Below, piece after piece: positions 7,091 to 20,200 of a stretch of DNA of 64,000 nt; the stretch's first letter is position 1, and each line of letters begins with the position of its first letter. The notes under the pieces are model-generated. The model had not been told where the DNA came from. It worked only from the letters and a program-made list of their open reading frames with translations, and made no database searches. Source of the DNA: Lepidodermella squamata (Eukaryota; Animalia; Gastrotricha); the NCBI GenBank assembly GCA_047495785.1, contig JBLDXI010000032.1:1736001-1800000 (forward strand), written 5' to 3'. The translations under genes were made by a program, and so were the position numbers.

Positions 7091-7172
7091 ACAATGCATC
7101 CGTTTTTACTGTCTCAGTCAGCATTTATTTCTGTGAGATTTGTGTGAGAATATTCCGGTGTTCAATAAAATC

Positions 7173-7943
7173 ACCTGGCTGAAGCTAGCAGGACGATTCC
7201 TGCAGGATTGTGTTCCGCTCATTTTCGCTCTTGTGCCACCCTTGTGCCATCAGTCTGAGGGCCTAAATAGTTTATCCAGGTGTATTCCAGAGATTGCTGC
7301 ATCGATTTCATCAAGTAATTAACGATTGACGCAATTAAGGGTCACAGTACATGCGCCCTGTTCTAAATTAACCTCGCAGGATACTGTGCCAGTCATAAAA
7401 CTTGGTGGACTGGGGTAGAATTTTGCGCCGATTACGAATATGCAATCCTCTTGCGTGTCCAATCTGCACAAAATTCGATTTGTGCCATTATTTGTGAAAA
7501 TAAGCAATAAAATGACCCATCACGTGACCTTTGACCTCAGGTGAGCTTGTGCCGGCAATGCAGGATTGACCAATCGATAGAGCGGGGTCGATTACCCTAG
7601 TTTGCCAATTGACAGCCCAATGCAATCAAAATTGAGTGCGGAAAACGTAGCCGAAATACCGTAAAATATCAATTTTTAGCACCGCAGGGTGACTACAACA
7701 AAAAGTGGGTCAAACACCCTTGCAGGATTGTGTGCCAGGCATTATGATATGACCGTCTAGACCAGTTTTCGGCCCTGATCACGAATTTCAAGTCCGTTTG
7801 CGTAACCGGAGCCGGCAAATCGGTTATTTTGCCTGATTTATGAGGAAAAACCGCGAAAATTGGCTTGTCACGTGACCTGTGACCCCAGGTGTGCCTGTGC
7901 CAGTGGCGCAGGAAGCGCCATTCGATCGGGCGTGGTCGAAAAC
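7173..7943 (+). repeat. Left terminal inverted repeat of the MULE
   Basis: Reverse complement of 16500-17270 with about 8 mismatches by eye. The mirrored spurious ORFs 7319-7507(-) and 16936-17124(+) are identical except for the last residue. Confidence 0.95.
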
Positions 7944-8382
7944 GGTGGTTCTCTACGGGGCAACCTCGCCTAATGAAATCTGAGAATTTAAAACGTTACT
8001 GAAAATAAGTATTTCGATATTATTACGTAATTTTTATTTTTTCTACAGATTATAATGTAATTAATTCCACTGTTTTTTCTTATAGTACAAATTGAACAGG
8101 AATGGAGAATGGAAATAAGAATGGAAAATTATTTGGATCATTTTCACTCTTCGGAAAAGCAATTAGACACCGACTGTGTAAATAAGACGTTAGTAGGACT
8201 TCGCATCTCAAATATATAAGAGATGCCTAATAAACAGCGCGAGTATAAATGGTATTGTATCGTGTATCGTTTCCATTCTATGTGAAGCGGTATGATAAAT
8301 GTCCAGCGATACCCTGTAGATATTAGTGTATCCCAACGAAAACCAATAGCGGAGATTAAAAATTCAAAACGGCAAAAAATAG

Positions 8383-11300
8383 TTAGCGGTCAAATATGTA
8401 GTCGCCTGAATTCAGTTCCGGTTCCGGACAGCCTAGTTCCTGTTCGTCTGGCGTACGCCCAAGAATAAGAAAAACGCCTAGCCATTTTTTCAAGGCCGGT
8501 GATTCAGGCCGCAGGTAATTCCGTCTCGCCTTCCCCTCTGTGACAAGGGTATAATCCAACGGGAAAGAACCAGGCGTAAGGAGGCCGTAGTTTGACGTGC
8601 CGCTTTGCCTAGCCACGACGGCGACGACTTCATAGCTGGATATTACTGCTATATTACAGGTTTTACGTTTCTTAACAAAAATTTACCTCAGATTCTGGAA
8701 TGATAATTGCGTTAGATTCAGGCATTTGCTAAGGGCTACAAGACCATCAATGGCGATGATGATGGTGGGGCTGGGCGAAACTCGGCCATCTTCGTGATGA
8801 TGAGTGCCAACACTGATCAGCCTCGTGCCCTGGCATGGCGATCTGAACAAATTTCAACCCCAACATTTTAACCTGGCCGTTAATTTAACAATCTTTAGAT
8901 GATTTTACCCGCTAGATTCCACGTATTGACAATCGGTCGAAGTCTGACCGAATCGGTTGCCCAACATTTCCTCTAGCTGCCGCGTAGATGGAAAGCTACG
9001 AATTAATTGGCATTCAAAATTGATCCGAACAAATTAATTGATAAAGCAAACCCATCCGACTCGATGATGAGGAACGGATTCGTAATGAATTCTGACCCAG
9101 GCGGAGAGGTGCAGAATTCATTTTGGCAGTTGCCAACTTTCCTAGTAAGCCCACATCGGTCAATAGCAAAGATCGCTGAGCACAACTGACTGGGCCTTAT
9201 GTCGTCAAAGCTGTACACTCTGCCCCCATCTTCACGTCGAACAGCGAGATCAGAGTAGAGCTCTTCGATCAAAATGCCTCGCCTAGCTCGGAGTTCGAAG
9301 CGTGTCGCTGCTTTATTGCTGATGGCTTCCAAATAAGAAACCCATTTACCTGGGCATAGACTTTGGCGAATTGGGGCCATGCCCATAGCAAATAGGTCAA
9401 AAGGTCTGGTGCTTCTTAGGTCAACGTCATGACTTGCACTGTCAGAGGCAGGCAATTGGTCGAGCACGCTGAGACCCAAGGCGAAGCTGATTTCTTGGGC
9501 TTCCGATCCGTCCGAAGCCAAATCATCGAAGGTCCAAGCGCCCTTGCGTGACTTACCTTTTATGGTTTTAGGAGCCTTGGGAGACTTCGGAGACTTCGGA
9601 GCCTTGGGAGCCTTGGGAACCTTGGGAGCCTTGGGAACCTTGGGAGCCTTGGGAGCCTTGGGAACCTTGGGAGCCTTGGGAACCTTGGGAGCCTTCGTAG
9701 TCTTGAGAGGCTTCGGATCTTTTACGGTCTTCACAGTTCTTCGAGGCTTTGAATCTTTCGAGGCTGACGTTGGAATTTCCAGTGGATCCGGTGCATTCGC
9801 AAGCTTTGGAATTTTCCTAGGCTTCGAATCTTTGGGTATCAGGGTTGTTTCTGGAGCCCTTCGTCGCCGGGATGCCATGGGCTGACTTGCTGTAGCCGAG
9901 CTGACACTTGAGGCCGGCTCATCATCCATAGCCGAAACTATCGACGAACTTTCAAAGACCATCCCGCTGTCTTGCAATCGTGAGGGTATTTCAAACTGGA
10001 AATTGCTCAACTCGGAAATCGCCTCTAGACCGGCCAGTCTATATAGTTATAACATTAAAGTCCCGATATCGTCCCATATAAATAAGCCAATAAGCAGGCA
10101 GCCATTCTATACCTAGAAAATGAGCTTTTCCCAACAGCCGAGGGCTGCTGTGACTCTTTGCTGCTGAGATCCATTGCAGCATGGGCATGTTCGGAATAGG
10201 GTGGAGGAGGTGAAGGTGGAAGTGGGACGCTAAATTATCATATAGCTAGACAAGTCCTTCAAAGTAAAACACAAAAATCACCTGGAAGATGGAACAGATT
10301 CCACGAGCGTAGCAACATGAGCCGAAACAGGTTTGGGACAGCAGTAAAAGAAAATAACTGCGTAGTAAAGGCGATAGAATTTCTCAAGCTCATTGTCGAA
10401 TTTTCGCCAAAACGGTTTCCGTGTACGTGAGCTGACTACAAGATCGTCAAGCAAGTAAGCGTCACCATCGATGATCCTGATAGTGACGTAATGTCCCGAG
10501 CCTTCCCTATCCTCGGTTCTCTTGCCTTCTGCTCGATTAGGCTCGCTGAAAAGAATAGCGCTGTGAAGCGAATATCTTTAGGGGAAAGGAGATCTGACAT
10601 TTGGCTTCATTTACAACACTGAGATGAAGACTTACGAAAAGTGTTCCATTTCAAGAGACTTGGGAGCTTGGTTGAGAACAGTGGTTGCTGTCCACTCCCA
10701 ACTCGACTCAAACTCGATGGCAATAAAAGGTAGGGGCTTGCTTGGATCATGATGCCTAGCGGGTGATAGCATTCGGTGATGGTTTTTGCAACGGCACATC
10801 ACAATGTCCTCAAAAAATAAGGCGTCGATTTGCGCTTGGAAAGTCACCCTTTGCAAAGCTGTATTTGCTCGAACAGCCTCATAGTGCTGCGCATTTTCCC
10901 TACAAATTAATGAAATAAATAGATAACAGCCTTGAATGGGACAGAAAACTGACGCCTCAATAGAACCCAATAAGACAGGATTAACCACTTTTTGTATCTG
11001 AGTCGGCTTACGGCATTCTTCACACGGATGTAGGTCTCGCAATAAATAGCAGCCATCAAGTTCACACATTTGCGTAAGCCAAAGCATACAATTTCCATCT
11101 CCAACATTGGAAACTCGCATCTCGTAATGATCAATTGGGCAGCAAATTGATGAATCAGGGGATACTTCGATGACCCGACCGAAGCAATCAATTGGCAACA
11201 ACCTAGTTTCATTGTTCCTCGGAAACACTCTGCCCATAAATCTGAATCTGGCTAACTGAGCCATCCTCTCGCCGTTTTCACTGGAAGCCGCGTCCTTTAG

Positions 11301-14300
11301 ATTCCTCAGATAGTCCACCAGCTCGGACCCACAGAAACGCTCCATTTCGCAATGGGACACGGCGTTAATCAGGCTGTCCACTGCACACGTGTTGCTGGTT
11401 ACGTGATAGAACTCTTCTTTATCGGTTGAGAAAATTTTAACACTCCCTCCGTTTTGCAGCAAATATACGCCACCTGACAACATTGTTTCAGTAACGATGA
11501 CCGATTTCGAAGCCCCGCGTTGGTCATTTCCAGTTCCACGCGCAGGTCTTTCCGAAGTCCCAGCCGTTGGACCAGTCGAGGTTCCAGCCATTGGACCAGT
11601 CGAGGTTCCAGCCATTGGACCAGTCGAGGTTCCTGCCATTGGACCAGCCGAGGTTCCAGCAATTGGACCAGCCGAGGTTCCAGCCATTGGACCAGTCGAG
11701 GTTCCAGCTGTTGGACCAGCCGAGGTTCCAGCAATTGGACCAGCCGAGGTTCCAGCCATTGGACCAGTCGAGGTTCCAGCTGTTGGAACAGTCGAGGTTT
11801 CTGCCATTGGACCAGTCAAGGTTCCAGTTGTCGGAACAGCCGAGCTTCGAGTTTTTGGACCAGTCGAGGTCCCAGCCATTGGACCAGCCGAGCTTCGAGT
11901 TGTTGGACCAGTCGAGGTTCCTGCCATTGGACCAGTTGAGGTCCCAGGCGTGAAAACACATCCCAAAATGTCATCAGACACAGAGAAGTCGGATTGTTCT
12001 GAATCAGAAGTTGAAGAGCTGAGGATGTCGTTGTAGGCCTCGTCCACACCCCCATCACTTCCAAGGTCCCAAATGGGACGTTTAGGAGGCAAGGATTCCG
12101 TTGCTGAGCTAATCTTGGATGTTTGCTGGTAAGTAATTTCGAACCTCGCAGAAAATTCCTTAACCAGACGTTGAGCAGCATATCCGATCCTTTGCCGACT
12201 TTTTTCTTTCCGAAATTTTTCGACCTCTTTATCAGCAGTATCAGCCTGTCTGTTTCGTTTCTGTGGGGCCGGCATCTCGTCGGAGAGCTCGATTGCTGCC
12301 AGACGGCCTGATTGGCTGACTTCCAGCTTTCGTACAACAGCGGCAATTGACTGCTTCTTCTTACCTCCCAAGATGACGTTCTTCGTTGTATTTATTTCTG
12401 CTTCAACTGCCCCATTAGTGTAGTGACCAGGCGGCTTTTCCCATTTGGGACTGAAAGATTTGAAAATATTTTTACGAGTCCATTCTACTACTTTCAACCA
12501 CCCAGGGTGCCATGTGACTAAAATACTGAACTACGTTTCAAATTTAAGAGCACCAAGTGATCGAAATTGTTTTTATTCATAGTTTATTATTAAAACTCAC
12601 AAACGCTTCGCTGCAATTCCGCTAACAAAGAGAGCAGACCAAAGAGGAAAAAGCGGCAAAAGTCTGTCTAGAAGCGCATCCATTGCGAATTTCGCGTAGA
12701 AGATATTGCGGGTTGAATCACCATCAGCTTCCATTTCATCTGCGGCTGGAATTGAGTCGTCAATCGACCGTTCCCGAATGTAGGAAAACATTCCACAACA
12801 GGCCGAGAGCTTTTTATATGTCCCACATTGAAATTCTTTGGAATCCTCTGGCCCAGCTATGATATTCGAACAAGCTTCACCGTTTAAATCTTCAACAAAT
12901 TCTTCATCTCCTTGTATGGGAACCTCGGCTTTTGGCATACTTTCTGCGTAGATCTGCATCAGTGAGTTTAGATGGCTAATAGCCAACTCAACGTCTTCGC
13001 CATAATTCTCGGTATCGAATACCTTGCACATCAGGTGGAAAATCATGAGAGCCAGACCAAGGTTCTGAGCACTCTGCAGAAATGCGAAGCATTGCATAAA
13101 AAAGGTTTTGACATGCTTTTGCAAGTATTTTCTTCCTTTTGAATTCAAAATTCCCATGACTTCTTTGAATAGATGAGCCATGCAAAGGACGAGCAACGTG
13201 AAATGACCCAAATCAGACTGGATCTCGCTTTGAACTTTCCCAGAAGAATCGCGAAGGGCTGAAAAGGTGTAGTTGAGAACTCGCTGCAGGCGGCATTGAT
13301 TATAACATCGTGCTACAGCTTGCATCAAGGCAAAAGAATGATCGGTTACCACCGCATAAGGAGCCAGAACTTTGCCGCCTACTACATCATCCCAAGTGCT
13401 CCAAAGTACCTGAAGTGCATTGGAGATGGAAAATGCGTGCTGGTCAGAGAGGAAAAACTGTCCCATCGGAACCTTGGGACCACTTTCACCCAGCATTGGA
13501 CAACGCATGCAGAGCAGGTATAGGAAAACCCGTTTTCCAGTTAATAAATCATCCGCAACGACTTCACCCGTTGAATTAACATGAAAAACGTGGGATCTCC
13601 TCGCTTGCCGAGCCCATGTCTGACCCAGCCGAAATTGGCGATCGTAGCCAAGTACTACGCCAAGCGGTAGCATTGAGACGCCTCGAGCGTACCGTAGCTC
13701 ATCGTCCAGCGTCATTTGATCAACCAGCCACAAGAAGAGGTCAATGTATGGATTCTCGTGCATTCTTTGCTCCAAGTTTTGATCCGAAGATATCTTCTGA
13801 AGAACGGTCTCACTTGGTATAGCAGCCAAATTCACAAACTCTCCTTGTAAAAGGAAAAATACAGGTCATAACCAGTAAGAAAAAGCCAGCTAACTTTATG
13901 TAAAAATAATATCGAATAATAACACATTTCGTCTTTCCATTTCGAACACCGAACCAAAACTACAACTGACTCGGAAGTCGAATCAATGCGGTGTTATAAA
14001 AATATTCGGGTATGAAAAGTGGGCACCTTTATTTTAGGATTCCCGTGCTAACTACAACCGATATTGATTTAAAGTTCAGATTTTACAAATCTATTATTTT
14101 GATAATATGAGAAGTCTCGGAAGAAAATATTCGAAATATTTCTTCTTAGCTGACGACATTATTTATAGGCTAACAGCATGTGTTCGTGAGCGCTTCAATA
14201 TCGATCAAGAAAATTAAAGGCTGGCCAACAGCGCGCAGTTTGCAATAAAATAAAAAATTCACCTCGAACTCTTCTTTTGTGAGCCTGATCGAGCAAAGCC

Positions 14301-15143
14301 CATAGGTAGGCCGCGGGTTTCTGCTGTCGTAGCTCTTTCGCCAACTGTTTTCGAGCAACACCTCGCGTTTGGATGGTTCGTGGCGTAACCGGCTCATGCA
14401 CCAGTGTCCCAATAATGGTTACCGTTACAGGAATACGATTATCCTGATTGAGTTGCCTGGGGTTGAACCTGAACTTGAACTTGCGGCAACCACTTTCTGC
14501 CTGGCAATACCCAGCACAAGTTACCGATGATCCGTTCTTAGTCACGTCGCTGTATTTCAGTTTAACGTCGCATTTGCGGACTTCTGCGGTCATTTTCGAC
14601 TGAAATAGGGTTGTCCAACCTGGCTTCAGGTGTTTGGACTGACGAGCTGATGGCAGATAAGGCGCAACTTCTTCTAGCGTTAACTGGAACTCATCGACAG
14701 CCTCCGGTATTGTCGCTGGCGATTTTTTTTCCATCACCTTCTTATTCCTGATGATTGGAGCCTCCGATGACTCGGTCAACGAAGAGCTGTTACTAGTCGA
14801 CTCGCTGCTGAGAAACTGAGGATGGTTATTGGCTATGTGCGTGTAGAGCCTGTGGCGAAGTGGACCGTCATTTTCACTGAATAGACGAGCTGCCAACCGC
14901 CCTACAACGGACTCGTGCCGTCGCCAACCTACGAATTCCATTATTAAAATCTCCATCAATTACGTATATCCCATTTTTATCACCTGAAACTAGTTGACCA
15001 GGATTTTTTTTGAAGAAATCCAGCAGCTTTTTGTCATCGATTGGCCTGTTGTCCTTGGCCCTCCGCCGAGCAGCACTGGCAGCAGGTGCCTCTATAGACA
15101 GCATCACCAGGTACAGCAGTAACAAACCGATAGGCTTGAACAT
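8383..15143 (-). CDS. Multi-exon NOF-like MULE transposase fused to a USP-like peptidase and a second degenerate USP-like domain
   Basis: GT-AG introns link exons at approx. 15143-14984, 14930-14263, 13843-12601, 12450-10636, 10575-10282, 10229-10113, 10038-9052 and three short 3' exons ending at 8383; frame was checked by hand at most junctions. Motifs: LKPGWT..C..C N-terminal domain; HVNSTG / VVTDHS / CMAH / TNGAVE (DDE core); NTCAVDS and GHYV...LLDD (USP boxes). Start codon uncertain. Confidence 0.8.
9572..9695. repeat. 9-bp tandem repeat (GAGCCTTGG/GAACCTTGG) encoding (KAP/KVP)n in the transposase
   Basis: About 13 units, seen directly. Confidence 0.95.
11556..11947. repeat. 24-bp minisatellite encoding (PMAGTSTG)n in the transposase
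   Basis: About 16 units of GGTTCCAGCCATTGGACCAGTCGA, seen directly; open in all six frames. Confidence 0.95.
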
Positions 15144-16499
15144 CACATTGCGCCCTGAAAAATATAGGTTGAATATATATCGACTGATCAGGACTTCAAT
15201 TTTCAATTTGAAATTGAACCAAACGCAAATGTATAAAAAAGTTGACATCTTCGAATATTTTTTAAATAATGGCGACTACGCCGCGACCTGAAGATGAGGA
15301 ACAGGCCTTTCATGTTTATTGTTTCATCAATCGTAAAATTCCAGAAAATCCAAAAAAACAGTTTTGTGAGAATTAATTAAAACTATAAGTAAGACCGCAA
15401 ACAATTATGAAAACGGCGATAGCCTCCGGCCGACCCTCCTCGGGAATATCTTACGGGTTTCAATTTAAATGTGGAGAAAGCTGAAAAAATTAGAAATACT
15501 CTCAAAATTTCCTAAAATTCAGAATGAACATGAAACCCGAGAGCGCCCAATCTATTCGAACATGCTCAATATGTATGCTCATTTCCTGTGACTGCGAACT
15601 CCTCAATAGGCGATAATAGATAATTTAAGACACTTTTAACATCGGCAATATCGCAGATATTACAGCCGCGAAATACTGAGGTAATAATAAACAGAAAATA
15701 CTTACTTTTTGGCTTTGACATCCCAATCTTCAAGGCCCTGTTAACCGTATGCATCTGAGTCACCCTCTAGTGTAACTAATTAGGAGATTCAAATGTATTT
15801 ATCGGTAATATCCAAAATATTTTCTAAAAAAGTGTCCGCATTTTGTAAATTGATTTTATTACAGATTTTAAGCGTTAGGCTCGAGAAAGGTGGGGGCGCA
15901 TAGTAGGCTGTAGTAGGATAAAATTAAAGAGCTGCATCGTCAATTTCGCTTTTTTGAGAGAAAAAACGGTGTTTTTCACCAAATATAAGCAACGTATTTC
16001 TTTAAACACCGCAAAATGACCTCGATCAATTCTGCGAATTTCTCTAGTCGCCTATGCCCCCATACTCATTAGCAAGAATAGGCCAAACAAATCTGTCGGT
16101 CAGTAGTCAGTACGCCTGCGCGTACGCGGGAGGGGCTTTATTGCGTGTAATAACTTTCGAAGAAGGCGCCCATTTTATTAGCGCACACCTGTTATCGGCA
16201 ATCACTTGTAGTAGTGGCGGCTCAATGTATAATAAAGCCCGTCGATAATTAGTAGACCAAATTGTATGTGGCAAATATTTTCATCTCAGCATTCTGTAAT
16301 TGTAATTTCATGTAAAAAAAAAGAAACAGCAGAGAAATCAGCAGAGAATCGGATAAAATCGCCTGTGAAAGCGCATTCTGCTAACCGCTCAAATTGAAAA
16401 TACATTGGAAAAATATATCCATATATTATTTCGGCTAATTTCAGTAACGTTTTAAATTATCAAATGTTATTGCCTAGAGCTGCCCTGCTGACAGAAAGT

Positions 16500-17270
16500 G
16501 TTTTCGACCACGCCCGATCGAATGGCGCTTCCTGCGCCACTGGCACAGGCACACCTGGGGTCACAGGTCACGTGACAAGCCAATTTTCGCGGTTTTTCCT
16601 CATAAATCAGGCAAAATAACCGATTTGCCGGCTCCGGTTACGCAAACGGACTTGAAATTCGTGATCAGGGCCGAAAACTGGTCTAGACGGTCATATCATA
16701 ATGCCTGGCACACAATCCTGCAAGGGTGTTTGACCCACTTTTTGTTGTAGTCACCCTGCGGTGCTAAAAATTGATATTTTACGGTATTTCGGCTACGTTT
16801 TCCACACTCAATTTTGATTGCATTGGGCTGTCAATTGGCAAACTAGGGTAATCGACCCCGCTCTATCGATTGGTCAATCCTGCATTGCCGGCACAAGCTC
16901 ACCTGAGGTCAAAGGTCACGTGATGGGTCATTTTATTGCTTATTTTCACAAATAATGGCACAAATCGAATTTTGTGCAGATTGGACACGCAAGAGGATTG
17001 CATATTCGTAATCGGCGCAAAATTCTACCCCAGTCCACCAAGTTTTATGACTGGCACAGTATCCTGCGAGGTTAATTTAGAACAGGGCGCATGTACTGTG
17101 ACCCTTAATTGCGTCAATCCTTAATTACTTGATGAAATCGATGCAGCAATCTCTGGAATACACCTGGATAAACTATTTAGGCCCTCAGACTGATGGCACA
17201 AGGGTGGCACAATAACGAAAATGAGCGGAACACAATCCTGCAAGATACGTCCTGCTAGCTTCAGCCGGGT
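16500..17270 (-). repeat. Right terminal inverted repeat of the MULE
   Basis: Ends ...GCTAGCTTCAGCCGGGT, mirroring the left start ACCTGGCTGAAGCTAGC. Confidence 0.95.
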
Positions 17271-20200
17271 AATAAAATCAAGGAAAACAAACACGAAGGG
17301 CGGTAAGAATGCTTCGAAATAATATTAAGGAGGACTTTTCAATTTACGCAAGATATTTGATTAATCCGCACGTGTGGAAGAGATGTGACAATTTGTATTT
17401 CAACTTTCGCTTCTCACAAAGGAGAAGCCCAAGAAATCGCCCGAAGGCTCATTGAATGTTCCCACGCACGGAAATCTTTAGTAAAAGGCGAAAGATTTGT
17501 ACGTTTTGCGCGGAAACCAGAGTACTGATAACTCGTAGATTTCTCAACCGCTTTCACAGGCAACGCACACCCTGCCCACCAGGCACATTTGCATATGCAC
17601 ACTTTTGCCTACGTATTGTGTTTGCACTTTTAATGCGCACGTGCCGCTTTGATAATAAAAGGAGTGACAAGGCGTGCACGCGATGAATCACTACTACGAC
17701 TCATTAATTACTTTCTATTTTATTATTTTACTATTTAAATCGGTGATTTTTTTAATATTTTCCATGAGTCTTATTTGATGGATAAAAGTAACCATTTTGG
17801 TACAAAGAATTTTCGGCCTTGAGAGTGTTATTTTCCAGTCTATTAGCCTAAGGTAAACGCAGATCGCTTTCTTGATCCGCAAGAAAAAAAATACCCTAGT
17901 AGCAAAAACGAATGCTGATTATCTGAACCGTGTCAATGATGCAAACACGCCCGGTAAATATACATTCACACCGACTCATTGCTTGATACTATACCTACCT
18001 ACAGAAAAATAAACCTCATTAACCAGTCGAGAGGTAAATAATACAGCGTGGGGCGTAACGGCTTGTCAGAACACGCGTTGATCGAAAAAATAACCCGGTG
18101 CAGCTCGATTATTTATTTTCATTATACACTTGAAAAATAGGTACAAAAGTTTTGTTACACCGAGGTAATATATCGTATCGTTCTAAAAACAATAAATCGC
18201 AATGTGCCGAATGCTGCGTATCTGCGGATACATCTGCACACATGTTTGCCGTTGTATTTTGCAGCATAGGATCCTGGGCTTTACTTCCTAGATTCTCGCA
18301 CTTGATGGTGTGGGGTCGTGAGTTTTGGCAGCAAACAAATTGGGTGCTAAGTTGTGATTGTGTTAGGTAATCGCGCGTATTTATTTTGGCGCGCGCGATT
18401 TTGATCACCCTACCCTGCTCGCCCCCTTAATACGCGCGAGATAACGGCAAAATAGTAAGGCCACGCGCCCGGGTGCGCATCCTCATCGCCACCACTTTGC
18501 CTCGTTAGGCTAACAAGCCCTTAACAACGTAATGTAACGCGTGAACAGACAGACGAAGGGTACTAATAATGGGGGTCATTATTTATATTACACCAAGCAT
18601 TATCTACGCTGTATATACAAAATCGATCATTTGTTGTGGTTTTATTAGCCTAGTGGGCCTTTAACGTTTCAACAATTCGTTGATTTCATTTGAGGGCAAA
18701 GCAGCAATGTTACTAGAGGTATAAAACGCTTGGCTAATCACATGGTAAAATCTCGTGTTGGCTTTTATACATTTATTTATTTATTATCTCACTCGACATA
18801 ATTTACTTAACATTTTTAGGTATTTTCTCATTAATGATGCTTCATCACTTCTTTGTGCGCTCGCAAACATGTTGTTTTTCCGTCGTGTTTAACAGCAACG
18901 CTTTACCTGAGATGGATCTAAGCTAATTTAAACAATGCAAACCTGTTGTTTGAAAGACGGACGCTTTTCGTCTTGAAAAAACACCTTTAAGAACTTCATC
19001 CAAGGAATTTCTCGCAATATTCCTCAAAAATTGCAAATTCAGCATGAAAGTTAGAAATCATTTCTAAAAGCTGAGTTTTTTTATTTTCCCAACAAAGCGA
19101 ACCTTAAATAACCCTTAATCATTTAAAACATATTAAATATCCATATTTTGTTAACTTTTTTATGAATTTGTTTGAGTGTTCTGTGGAAGGCGGCGAAGAA
19201 TGATTAGAAGGCGCGCTTTTTTGCGGCAATAATTACCGCATCTTTTATGGCGATGGCTGATGACCGCGCGTCAGCGGCTGCGTGACACGTGCATGTGACG
19301 GCGTCGCGGCAATTCACGTCAAATTTTTACGACTCGCGCGCTAAATTGGCACAAGAACGAATAACGCCGGGTGGTGGCTGCCGAGCTCTGTGTTCTACAC
19401 AGGCCGCGTGTGCCGCAAAACGACGGGACGCTGCTGCCACCCGTTGCGCTTAAAAATATATATAGCCTGTGACAAGCTTTTTCCGTGCGCGCGCGCTCGC
19501 GACAAATAATAGCAAACAAATAAATAAATAGCTGGTGATCGCCGCCGTTTTTCTGCTGTGCTGGGCGGCCGGGGCGATTAAATGCGATAAATAAACGCGC
19601 ATTTAAACACAGCCGTCAAATATTATCAGCACACCACATCCGTTCGTCGTTTTTAGCCCGCCACACGTTCGTTTTTGCTCACACCATGAAACTTGTTTTA
19701 AAAATTAACCATACAACTCTCGGCCTGGTTCTATACCGCTGTAAAACGACATCAACACATACAACACCCAGGAATTAAATAAGTAATAAAAATAAAAACA
19801 GTAGCAACCGTGCGCTTGTATGACGGCTTGTTTGAATAACGCACGCGCAAAAATAATTATTATGCATTTTTCGAGCGCGCAATAAATGCAATCAAAGCCA
19901 ATTTATCCTATTAGCGTTTACCTAGCCAGCCACTATACGTCACAATCAGGTAATCATAGTAAAAGGCACAATCAAAAATCATCAAACCAGCTGTATATTA
20001 TTGTCGCATCTTCGTCGACGGCGCTGATGCGTCGCGTCCCAAATCCGCACGCGGCGTTTTATTGTTGTTGATAGCTATGATAGTCAGTCAGTGCGTCCGT
20101 CGCCGATAAATCGCGGCTTGTTTTTATGCGGCGCGTCTTCAAGGCAAGTACTCTCAATTACGTCACTTGGCGGTCAGTATGGTAATAAATTTTAGGCACG

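Follow-up and report, generated by a model that had tools for sequence, protein, structure and literature searches.

A Mutator-like transposon of the gastrotrich Lepidodermella squamata that probably encodes a transposase joined to a USP-fold protease and its catalytically dead duplicate

The stretch of Lepidodermella squamata DNA analysed here (64,000 nucleotides of contig JBLDXI010000032.1, hereafter the window) carries a DNA transposon of 10,098 bp at window positions 7173-17270, delimited by end-to-end BLAST comparison with three other places in the genome. In our reading, which we consider probable, this is an intact Mutator-superfamily-like transposon that encodes a transposase, a protease of the ubiquitin-specific protease (USP) fold and a dead duplicate of that protease within one protein of ~1,813 residues. 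As predicted from the minus strand, the protein would consist, in this order, of a zinc-finger-like N-terminus, an RNase-H-type DDE transposase, a repeat linker, the protease (unit 1), a Lys/Pro-rich linker and the duplicate (unit 2). A sequence-only reading of the same DNA had placed a transposase with an intact and a dead USP-like unit at 8383-15143. All of the motifs that it named were found on the minus strand at the positions given and inside that interval; the full feature is bigger, with the transposon spanning 7173 to 17270. The predicted gene is made up of the following parts.

14263-14956, minus strand: exon 1, first ATG at 14956; N-terminal C-x5-C...H pattern; alignable to the N-terminal portion of the single long open reading frames (ORFs) found in the paralogues L038 and L041
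12601-13843, minus strand: exon 2, transposase core; Asn at 13575-13577, second Asp at 13341-13343, C-x2-H at 13173-13184
10636-12450, minus strand: exon 3, transposase C-terminal motif (Glu at 12402-12404), octapeptide-repeat linker and Cys-box half of unit 1 (Cys at 11385-11387)
11553-11947, minus strand: 24-bp coding minisatellite within exon 3, 16.5 copies, octapeptides of the GTSTGPMA type (found with TRF)
10282-10575, minus strand: exon 4, His box of unit 1 (His at 10491-10493, Asp-Asp at 10443-10448); in-frame TGA at 10278-10280 within the donor CAG/gtgatt
9052-10038, minus strand: exon 5, Lys/Pro-rich linker and first part of unit 2; Arg at 9405-9407 in place of the catalytic Cys
8687-8842, minus strand: exon 6, middle of unit 2 with SPSPTIIIAIDG, the counterpart of PLPFIAIEF in unit 1; exon kept in L038, L039 and L040
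8383-8635, minus strand: exon 7, end of unit 2 with YEVVAVVARQSGTSNYG; Asn at 8590-8592 at the His position; coding to 8386, stop at 8383-8385

The seven exons hold 5,439 nt of coding sequence (1,813 codons), and the six introns between them (419, 150, 60, 243, 209 and 51 nt from 5' to 3') are all GT-AG and in frame, the donor of exon 1 being CGAG/gtgaat. The length of exon 3, which contains the 24-bp array, differs between copies of the element by -96, -72 and +432 nt, in frame every time; a second coding minisatellite with a 9-bp unit (KAP/KVP repeats) lies at 9571-9717, in the linker of exon 5. A reading-frame start at 15143, as had been proposed earlier, was rejected because it lies in another frame than the conserved N-terminal exon: the frame of the ATG at 14956 is the one to which paralogues with an unbroken N-terminal ORF align, and this is the start that homology supports. 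The upstream minus-strand ORF at 14960-15248, which starts with MFKPIGLLLLYLV at 15143, is signal-peptide-like and out of frame with exon 1, and it may be an upstream ORF or chance. The C-x5-C...H pattern of exon 1 is possibly a zinc-finger DNA-binding domain; no Pfam profile matched this exon. All searches and all folding described below were carried out exon by exon.

Unit 1 is probably a very divergent USP-fold (clan CA, C19-like) cysteine protease in which the catalytic residues have been conserved. Its Cys box (SNTCAVDS) comes after the 24-bp minisatellite, and the codon of the Cys was found at 11385-11387 of the minus strand, where it had been located before. The His box (GSGHYVT..LLDD) is reached via the 60-nt GT-AG intron and stands in a frame that had not been listed as an ORF, which agrees with the earlier remark that its exon was missing from the ORF track. 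In four paralogous families that are ~30% identical, the catalytic Cys (C32), the Asp-Ser that follows it and a His eleven residues further on (H43) are invariant (alignment A1), and the same is true of H29, Y30, D44 and D45 in the His box, H-Y...D-D-L (alignment A2). The claim that the first protease unit has intact catalytic residues is thus upheld for Cys, His and Asp alike, and this invariance, together with the homology of the two units described below, makes the motifs more than a chance occurrence. The spacing from Cys to His is ~300 residues, and between the two boxes there is a C-x2-C followed by a C-x-C or a second C-x2-C (here CEEC and CRC), resembling the zinc ribbon of the USP fingers. 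Such an order, with a Cys, ~300 residues containing Cys pairs and then His-Asp, fits the USPs and not Ulp1/C48; the latter identity was ruled out by the catalytic order, since in C48 proteases the His-Asp comes before the Cys. When unit 1 was compared with that of another copy of the element (copy B), the ratio of non-synonymous to synonymous differences per site (pN/pS) was 0.14.

The AlphaFold2 model of the 282-residue exon part of unit 1 had a mean pLDDT of 51, with 60-87 over the first 160 residues, and the Cys was seen directly before a helix that starts at residue 33. When this model was compared exhaustively by VIA, the top ranks were mostly taken by USP1, USP18, Pan2, nsp3, USPL1, TssM, USP9X, MERS PLpro, USP25 and USP28, all of them at Z-scores of 4.3 or less and obtained with a poor model. 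The top language-model look-alike of unit 1 was C14orf28/DRIP1 (0.92), followed by clusters of the UCH family; in a published survey C14orf28 is grouped with the USPs, its papain-like deubiquitinase domain having an additional 'fingers'-like domain (PMC10318531). At the N-terminal border of unit 1 (window ~11470-11480), three of the four families carry an L-x-G-G motif (LSGG, LDGG and LDGG) that is similar to the cleavage motif of viral USP-fold proteases.

Unit 2 is most likely a tandem duplicate of unit 1 that lost its catalytic residues before the families split, and no other part of the protein is as well conserved. The distal exons, in which STRPFD, Cys pairs, PTIIIAI and YEVVAVVARQSGTSNYG were found, are colinear and kept in other families. 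Alignment by hhalign of the first exon of unit 2 (alignment A6) with the Cys-box part of unit 1 (A1) gave a probability of 96.3% and an E-value of 1.7e-9, and NTCAVDS of unit 1 was paired with STRPFDL of unit 2. At the position of the Cys, the joint alignment of four families (A9) has R/R/V/K, and no conserved His or Asp was found in the last exon of unit 2 (alignment A7); all three catalytic residues are absent from unit 2. The earlier proposal of a second unit with the same layout but without catalytic Cys or His is therefore borne out by these alignments. Two phase 2 introns are common to the units, one situated nine residues past N-P-x-L and the other directly before Y-(S/E)-(L/V), each of which is present in unit 2 and, at the same position, in unit 1 of certain families. 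Because both the positions and the phases of these introns match, the two units are tied to each other over their full length. Unit 2 shows 59% identity between families in which the identity of the transposases is 32%, and its pN/pS against copy B was 0.17-0.20 (0.20 for exon 5). Judged by these comparisons, unit 2 is coding and constrained.

The sequences that were folded were single exons and represent part-domains. For the 179-residue exon of unit 2, AlphaFold2 gave a pLDDT of 69.5, with 80-93 over residues 25-130, and a helix starts at the Arg that stands in for the Cys. With this first-exon model, VIA was run against 48,161 PDB representatives: ranks 1-24 were all USP-fold chains, as were 37 of the 39 top matches, and the best were USP9X (Z 5.7, 102 residues aligned, 4.0 Å), USP30 (5.5), nsp3 (5.2), USP7 (5.1) and USPL1 (4.9). 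For the modelled unit 2, such near-exclusive enrichment of USP-fold chains is good evidence of the fold, short of proof. A USP fold for both domains had been expected from AlphaFold and Foldseek. For the thumb-fingers-palm architecture of USPs, VIA gave USP-rich top ranks with both units, at Z of 5.7 at most, and Foldseek was blank for both.

With regard to the transposase, the element is most likely Mutator-superfamily-like. The signature of this superfamily consists of a target-site duplication (TSD) of 9-11 bp, long terminal inverted repeats (TIRs) and a DDE transposase with C/D-x2-H between the second Asp and the Glu. In the alignment of the core exon (A3; eight paralogues from this genome, 20-31% identical), the second Asp (D165), C218 and H221 are invariant, the C-x2-H being located 53 residues past the second Asp. 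Exon 3 opens with PGHYTNGxVE..N..KN, a motif that is kept in four families (alignment A4). The resulting motif series, D..CxxH..N-G-x-x-E..N..K, taken together with the 9-bp TSD and the long TIRs, matches the Mutator signature. The MULE transposase profile (PF10551; MULE, Mutator-like element) had no Pfam match at E-values up to 1, either in the window copy or in paralogues of seven further families, and no known MULE protein was matched by the DDE exon or the 8-row DDE alignment in word-indexed protein searches. Language-model look-alikes of the transposase include MULE clusters (0.84-0.89), which are leads only. Sequence profiles therefore do not place the element among the Mutator/MULE transposons, as the Pfam and protein searches were blank and the language-model clusters stay at the level of leads. 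The first catalytic Asp is replaced by Asn (AAT, 13575-13577) in all four copies of the element, including the one that has diverged by 3%, and it is kept in all six other families that cover this column of A3. The DDE core named in the sequence-only reading has Asn and not Asp at its first catalytic position. Despite this Asn, the transposase exon is under strong purifying selection as estimated against copy B, with 8 synonymous differences, 1 non-synonymous difference and a pN/pS of 0.04.

The boundaries of the element were defined by the following features.

7173-17270, minus strand: whole transposon, ends ACCYGG...CCRGGT, from BLAST against three further copies
7173-8004, no strand assigned: 3' TIR of ~832 bp, the other arm lying at 16436-17270
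7164-7172 and again 17271-17279, no strand assigned: target-site duplication AATAAAATC, read directly

In the 121 Mb of genome surveyed there are four copies in total, the other three being 97.0-99.9% identical to the window copy over their full length in pairwise comparison. Each of the four is flanked by a 9-bp direct duplication of its own, and those of the other three are TCGGTCGTT, ACGGGAAAC and AACGTTGTC. The two arms of the ~830-bp TIRs are 97-98% complementary to each other, and no tandem sub-repeats were found inside them by a repeat scan with TRF. Of the earlier designation as Mutator/NOF-like, the Mutator part is supported by the 9-bp TSD at all four copies, the ~830-bp TIRs and the motif series, and the NOF/Foldback part found no support, the TIRs being free of tandem sub-repeats. 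When the genome was searched with the TIR, the eight arms belonging to these copies were recovered, together with a single solo arm, one deletion derivative and some partial matches that are short and more divergent. The element is a low-copy, recently mobile cut-and-paste transposon. The window copy is the only one in which each of the seven exons is open: exon 5 of copy A has lost 1 bp, exon 2 of copy B has gained 1 bp, and in copy C exons 2, 6 and 7 are broken by frameshifts or stops.

Taken together, the conservation of the catalytic residues in unit 1 and the presence of an ancient, dead and more strongly conserved unit 2 are the reasons for which the arrangement suggests an active protease of the ubiquitin or ubiquitin-like (UBL) type working with a non-catalytic binding or regulatory partner. 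The active unit would cleave after a ubiquitin-like C-terminus, so that ubiquitin or a ubiquitin-like modifier would come off the transposase, host chromatin or silencing factors, and it might also cut the polyprotein itself. The dead unit could serve as the ubiquitin/UBL-binding or regulatory partner. The earlier suggestion, that a deubiquitinase or deSUMOylase could protect the transposase or counter silencing, is one candidate role and competes with self-processing of the kind seen in viral papain-like proteases.

Several results weigh against this interpretation. No exon, and none of the paralogues of seven further families, was matched by Pfam. PDB sequence profiles searched with A1 and A2 returned chance matches only, and no relatives came up when the DDE exon, the 8-row DDE alignment and the unit 2 exon served as queries in word-indexed protein searches. 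An exhaustive HMMER search with the exon 3 profile found no relatives among 1.84 billion public protein representatives; its single match (E 8e-4) was discarded as an unrelated repeat protein. Foldseek against the PDB gave no matches with the model of unit 1, and neither Foldseek nor the atlas shape search, which was run for unit 2 only, gave any with the model of unit 2. The structure model of unit 1 is poor (pLDDT 51), and every VIA Z-score is below 6, where, as the tool itself warns, a score can mean merely a common arrangement. The comparison of the His exon with the last exon of unit 2 by hhalign was not significant. The families differ in the phase of the junction between the His exon and unit 2, which is 2 here and 1 in L038. 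Finally, the Asn found at the first catalytic position in every copy should cripple a DDE enzyme.

As to whether one protein or two are made, we hold it quite likely that the transposase, unit 1 and unit 2 are fused in one spliced product. The alternative, in which the element would have unit 2 as an independent second gene in the manner of mudrB in MuDR, appears unlikely to us. It draws on the in-frame stop that is found at the end of the His exon in every family and on the Met codons that occur early in the unit 2 open frame of the window copy. However, the TGA after the His exon falls within the splice donor in two families (CAG/gtgatt here, TAT/gtgagc in L036), L038 and L039 have an in-frame donor-acceptor pair at the same junction, and in-frame GT-AG junctions are kept in three families. 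Moreover, no Met precedes the conserved domain in the open frame that holds unit 2 in L038 and L039, and no AATAAA was found between the units, the only one downstream being at 8038, 345 nt past the final stop. The residues directly after the predicted acceptor, R-L-A-G-L, are conserved.

A different emphasis would be that the protease mainly processes its own precursor, like the USP-fold papain-like proteases of coronaviruses, releasing transposase, protease and pseudo-protease, with deubiquitinase (DUB) activity being secondary; we give this a minor but real chance, and it is compatible with the interpretation preferred here. In its favour, both unit models have PLpro and nsp3 chains among their best structural matches, the modules are separated by long flexible low-complexity linkers, and in three of four families the repeat linker is followed by the L-x-G-G motif precisely at the N-terminal border of unit 1; but the fourth family has PDSG at that site, and no comparable L-x-G-G motif precedes unit 2. 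It is very improbable, in our estimation, that the tail has a papain-like fold other than that of the USPs, or that it is a captured, decaying fragment of a host gene without function. No sequence-profile method recognised a USP (the UCH, UCH_1 and Peptidase_C98 profiles and the solved USP sequences did not match the units) and the VIA Z-scores are modest, as such an explanation would have it; yet four families share the catalytic residues without exception, pN/pS lies far below 1, the Cys...His-Asp order with an interval of ~300 residues that holds Cys pairs is what USPs typically show and rules out Ulp1/C48, and the structural matches of unit 2 are USP-fold in 37 of 39 cases. The interpretation as an intact Mutator-like transposon with an active USP-fold protease and a dead duplicate is thus the one that we prefer.

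At least four more diverged families are present in the same genome: L038 (C26), L039 (C17), L040 (C31), L041 (C9) and L036 (C26:406929-). Transposase, unit 1 and/or unit 2 occur in the same order where sampled, with L036 represented by the His exon of unit 1 and by unit 2 only. As this order is shared by diverged families, the tail is old within the lineage. In L040 there is a TGA inside unit 1. Alignments A5 and A8 were left out since the short middle exons of paralogues had been misplaced by MAFFT. Copy B (L012+L015, G000:C29:1922000-1941999) shows a synonymous divergence from the window copy of 0.10-0.17 in unit 2 (exons 5 and 7) versus 0.01-0.03 in the transposase and unit 1, which suggests that its 3' part is of mosaic or recombinant origin. 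In the deletion derivative at G000:C58:40617-41452 (L021/L030), unit 1 at about residue 82 is joined straight to the unit 2 exon at about residue 135, and a TIR fragment lies close by.

Protease domains have been seen on transposons before. KI-MULEs (Kaonashi) and other plant transposons carry Ulp1/C48 protease domains. The element described here resembles KI-MULEs in being a Mutator-type transposon with a putative protease domain for ubiquitin-like modifiers, and differs from them in clan and fold (His-Asp before Cys in C48, Cys ~300 residues before His-Asp here), in its animal host and in the extra dead duplicate. With MULE/MuDR elements, including Rehavkus, it shares the 9-bp TSD, long TIRs, a single large ORF, a C-x2-H situated past the second Asp and ahead of the Glu, and a minisatellite within the C-terminal half of the ORF; unlike them, it has no Pfam MULE match, no detectable sequence relative and Asn for the first Asp, and no PHD finger was found. 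Rehavkus-type MULEs have a 9-bp TSD, a single ORF and a C-terminal minisatellite, and in the survey that lists these features of MULE groups there is no mention of protease, peptidase or ubiquitin-related domains (PMC6446971). Where Rehavkus is defined by a PHD finger and by a minisatellite before the 3' TIR, Pfam found no PHD finger in the transposase examined here, and its minisatellites lie in coding linkers.

Among Helentrons, VTD and OTU domains are papain-fold DUB domains, at times two per protein; DUB activity of transposon VTDs has been shown experimentally, and the proposed role is to shield transposition proteins from degradation (PMC9741609). The similarity consists in a DUB-type domain of papain fold, here a predicted one, on a transposon; the differences are that Helentrons are rolling-circle elements whereas this one is of the DDE type, and that VTD has an Asp-x-His active site and belongs to another fold subclass. 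C14orf28 (DRIP1), although the nearest language-model look-alike of unit 1, is connected to it by no alignment or E-value, and it is a single-copy vertebrate host gene of ~310 residues without a transposase. The structural matches include USP-fold pseudo-enzymes and divergent members of the fold, namely PAN2, USPL1, coronavirus PLpro and TssM; here, by contrast, a transposase would carry an active-looking and a dead unit in tandem. That a USP fold can be retained without catalysis has a precedent in PAN2. Full-text literature searches brought up no relevant case of a Mutator-like or DNA transposase with a USP domain. Transposon-borne deubiquitinase-like proteases are already known, and what appears to be new is a candidate USP-type protease together with its dead twin on a Mutator-like transposase.

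We would add, as a speculation to which we attach little probability, that the active and dead pair may represent an unrecognised, transposon-borne branch of the USP superfamily with vertebrate C14orf28/DRIP1 among its domesticated descendants, forming an eraser-reader module that would tie transposition to ubiquitin/SUMO marks on chromatin or on the transposase. The possible link to C14orf28, if true, would give a human orphan protein an origin. As the domain is missed by current profile libraries, similar tails in other animal genomes may go unseen. A dead copy that is constantly paired with the enzyme and more strongly conserved than it would offer a compact natural enzyme/pseudo-enzyme pair for study. 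Ulp1, OTU and herpes-tegument-like DUB domains are already known from transposons; a USP-fold enzyme joined to a DDE transposase, if true, would be another independent acquisition and would strengthen the case that mobile DNA in general needs to have ubiquitin-like marks removed.

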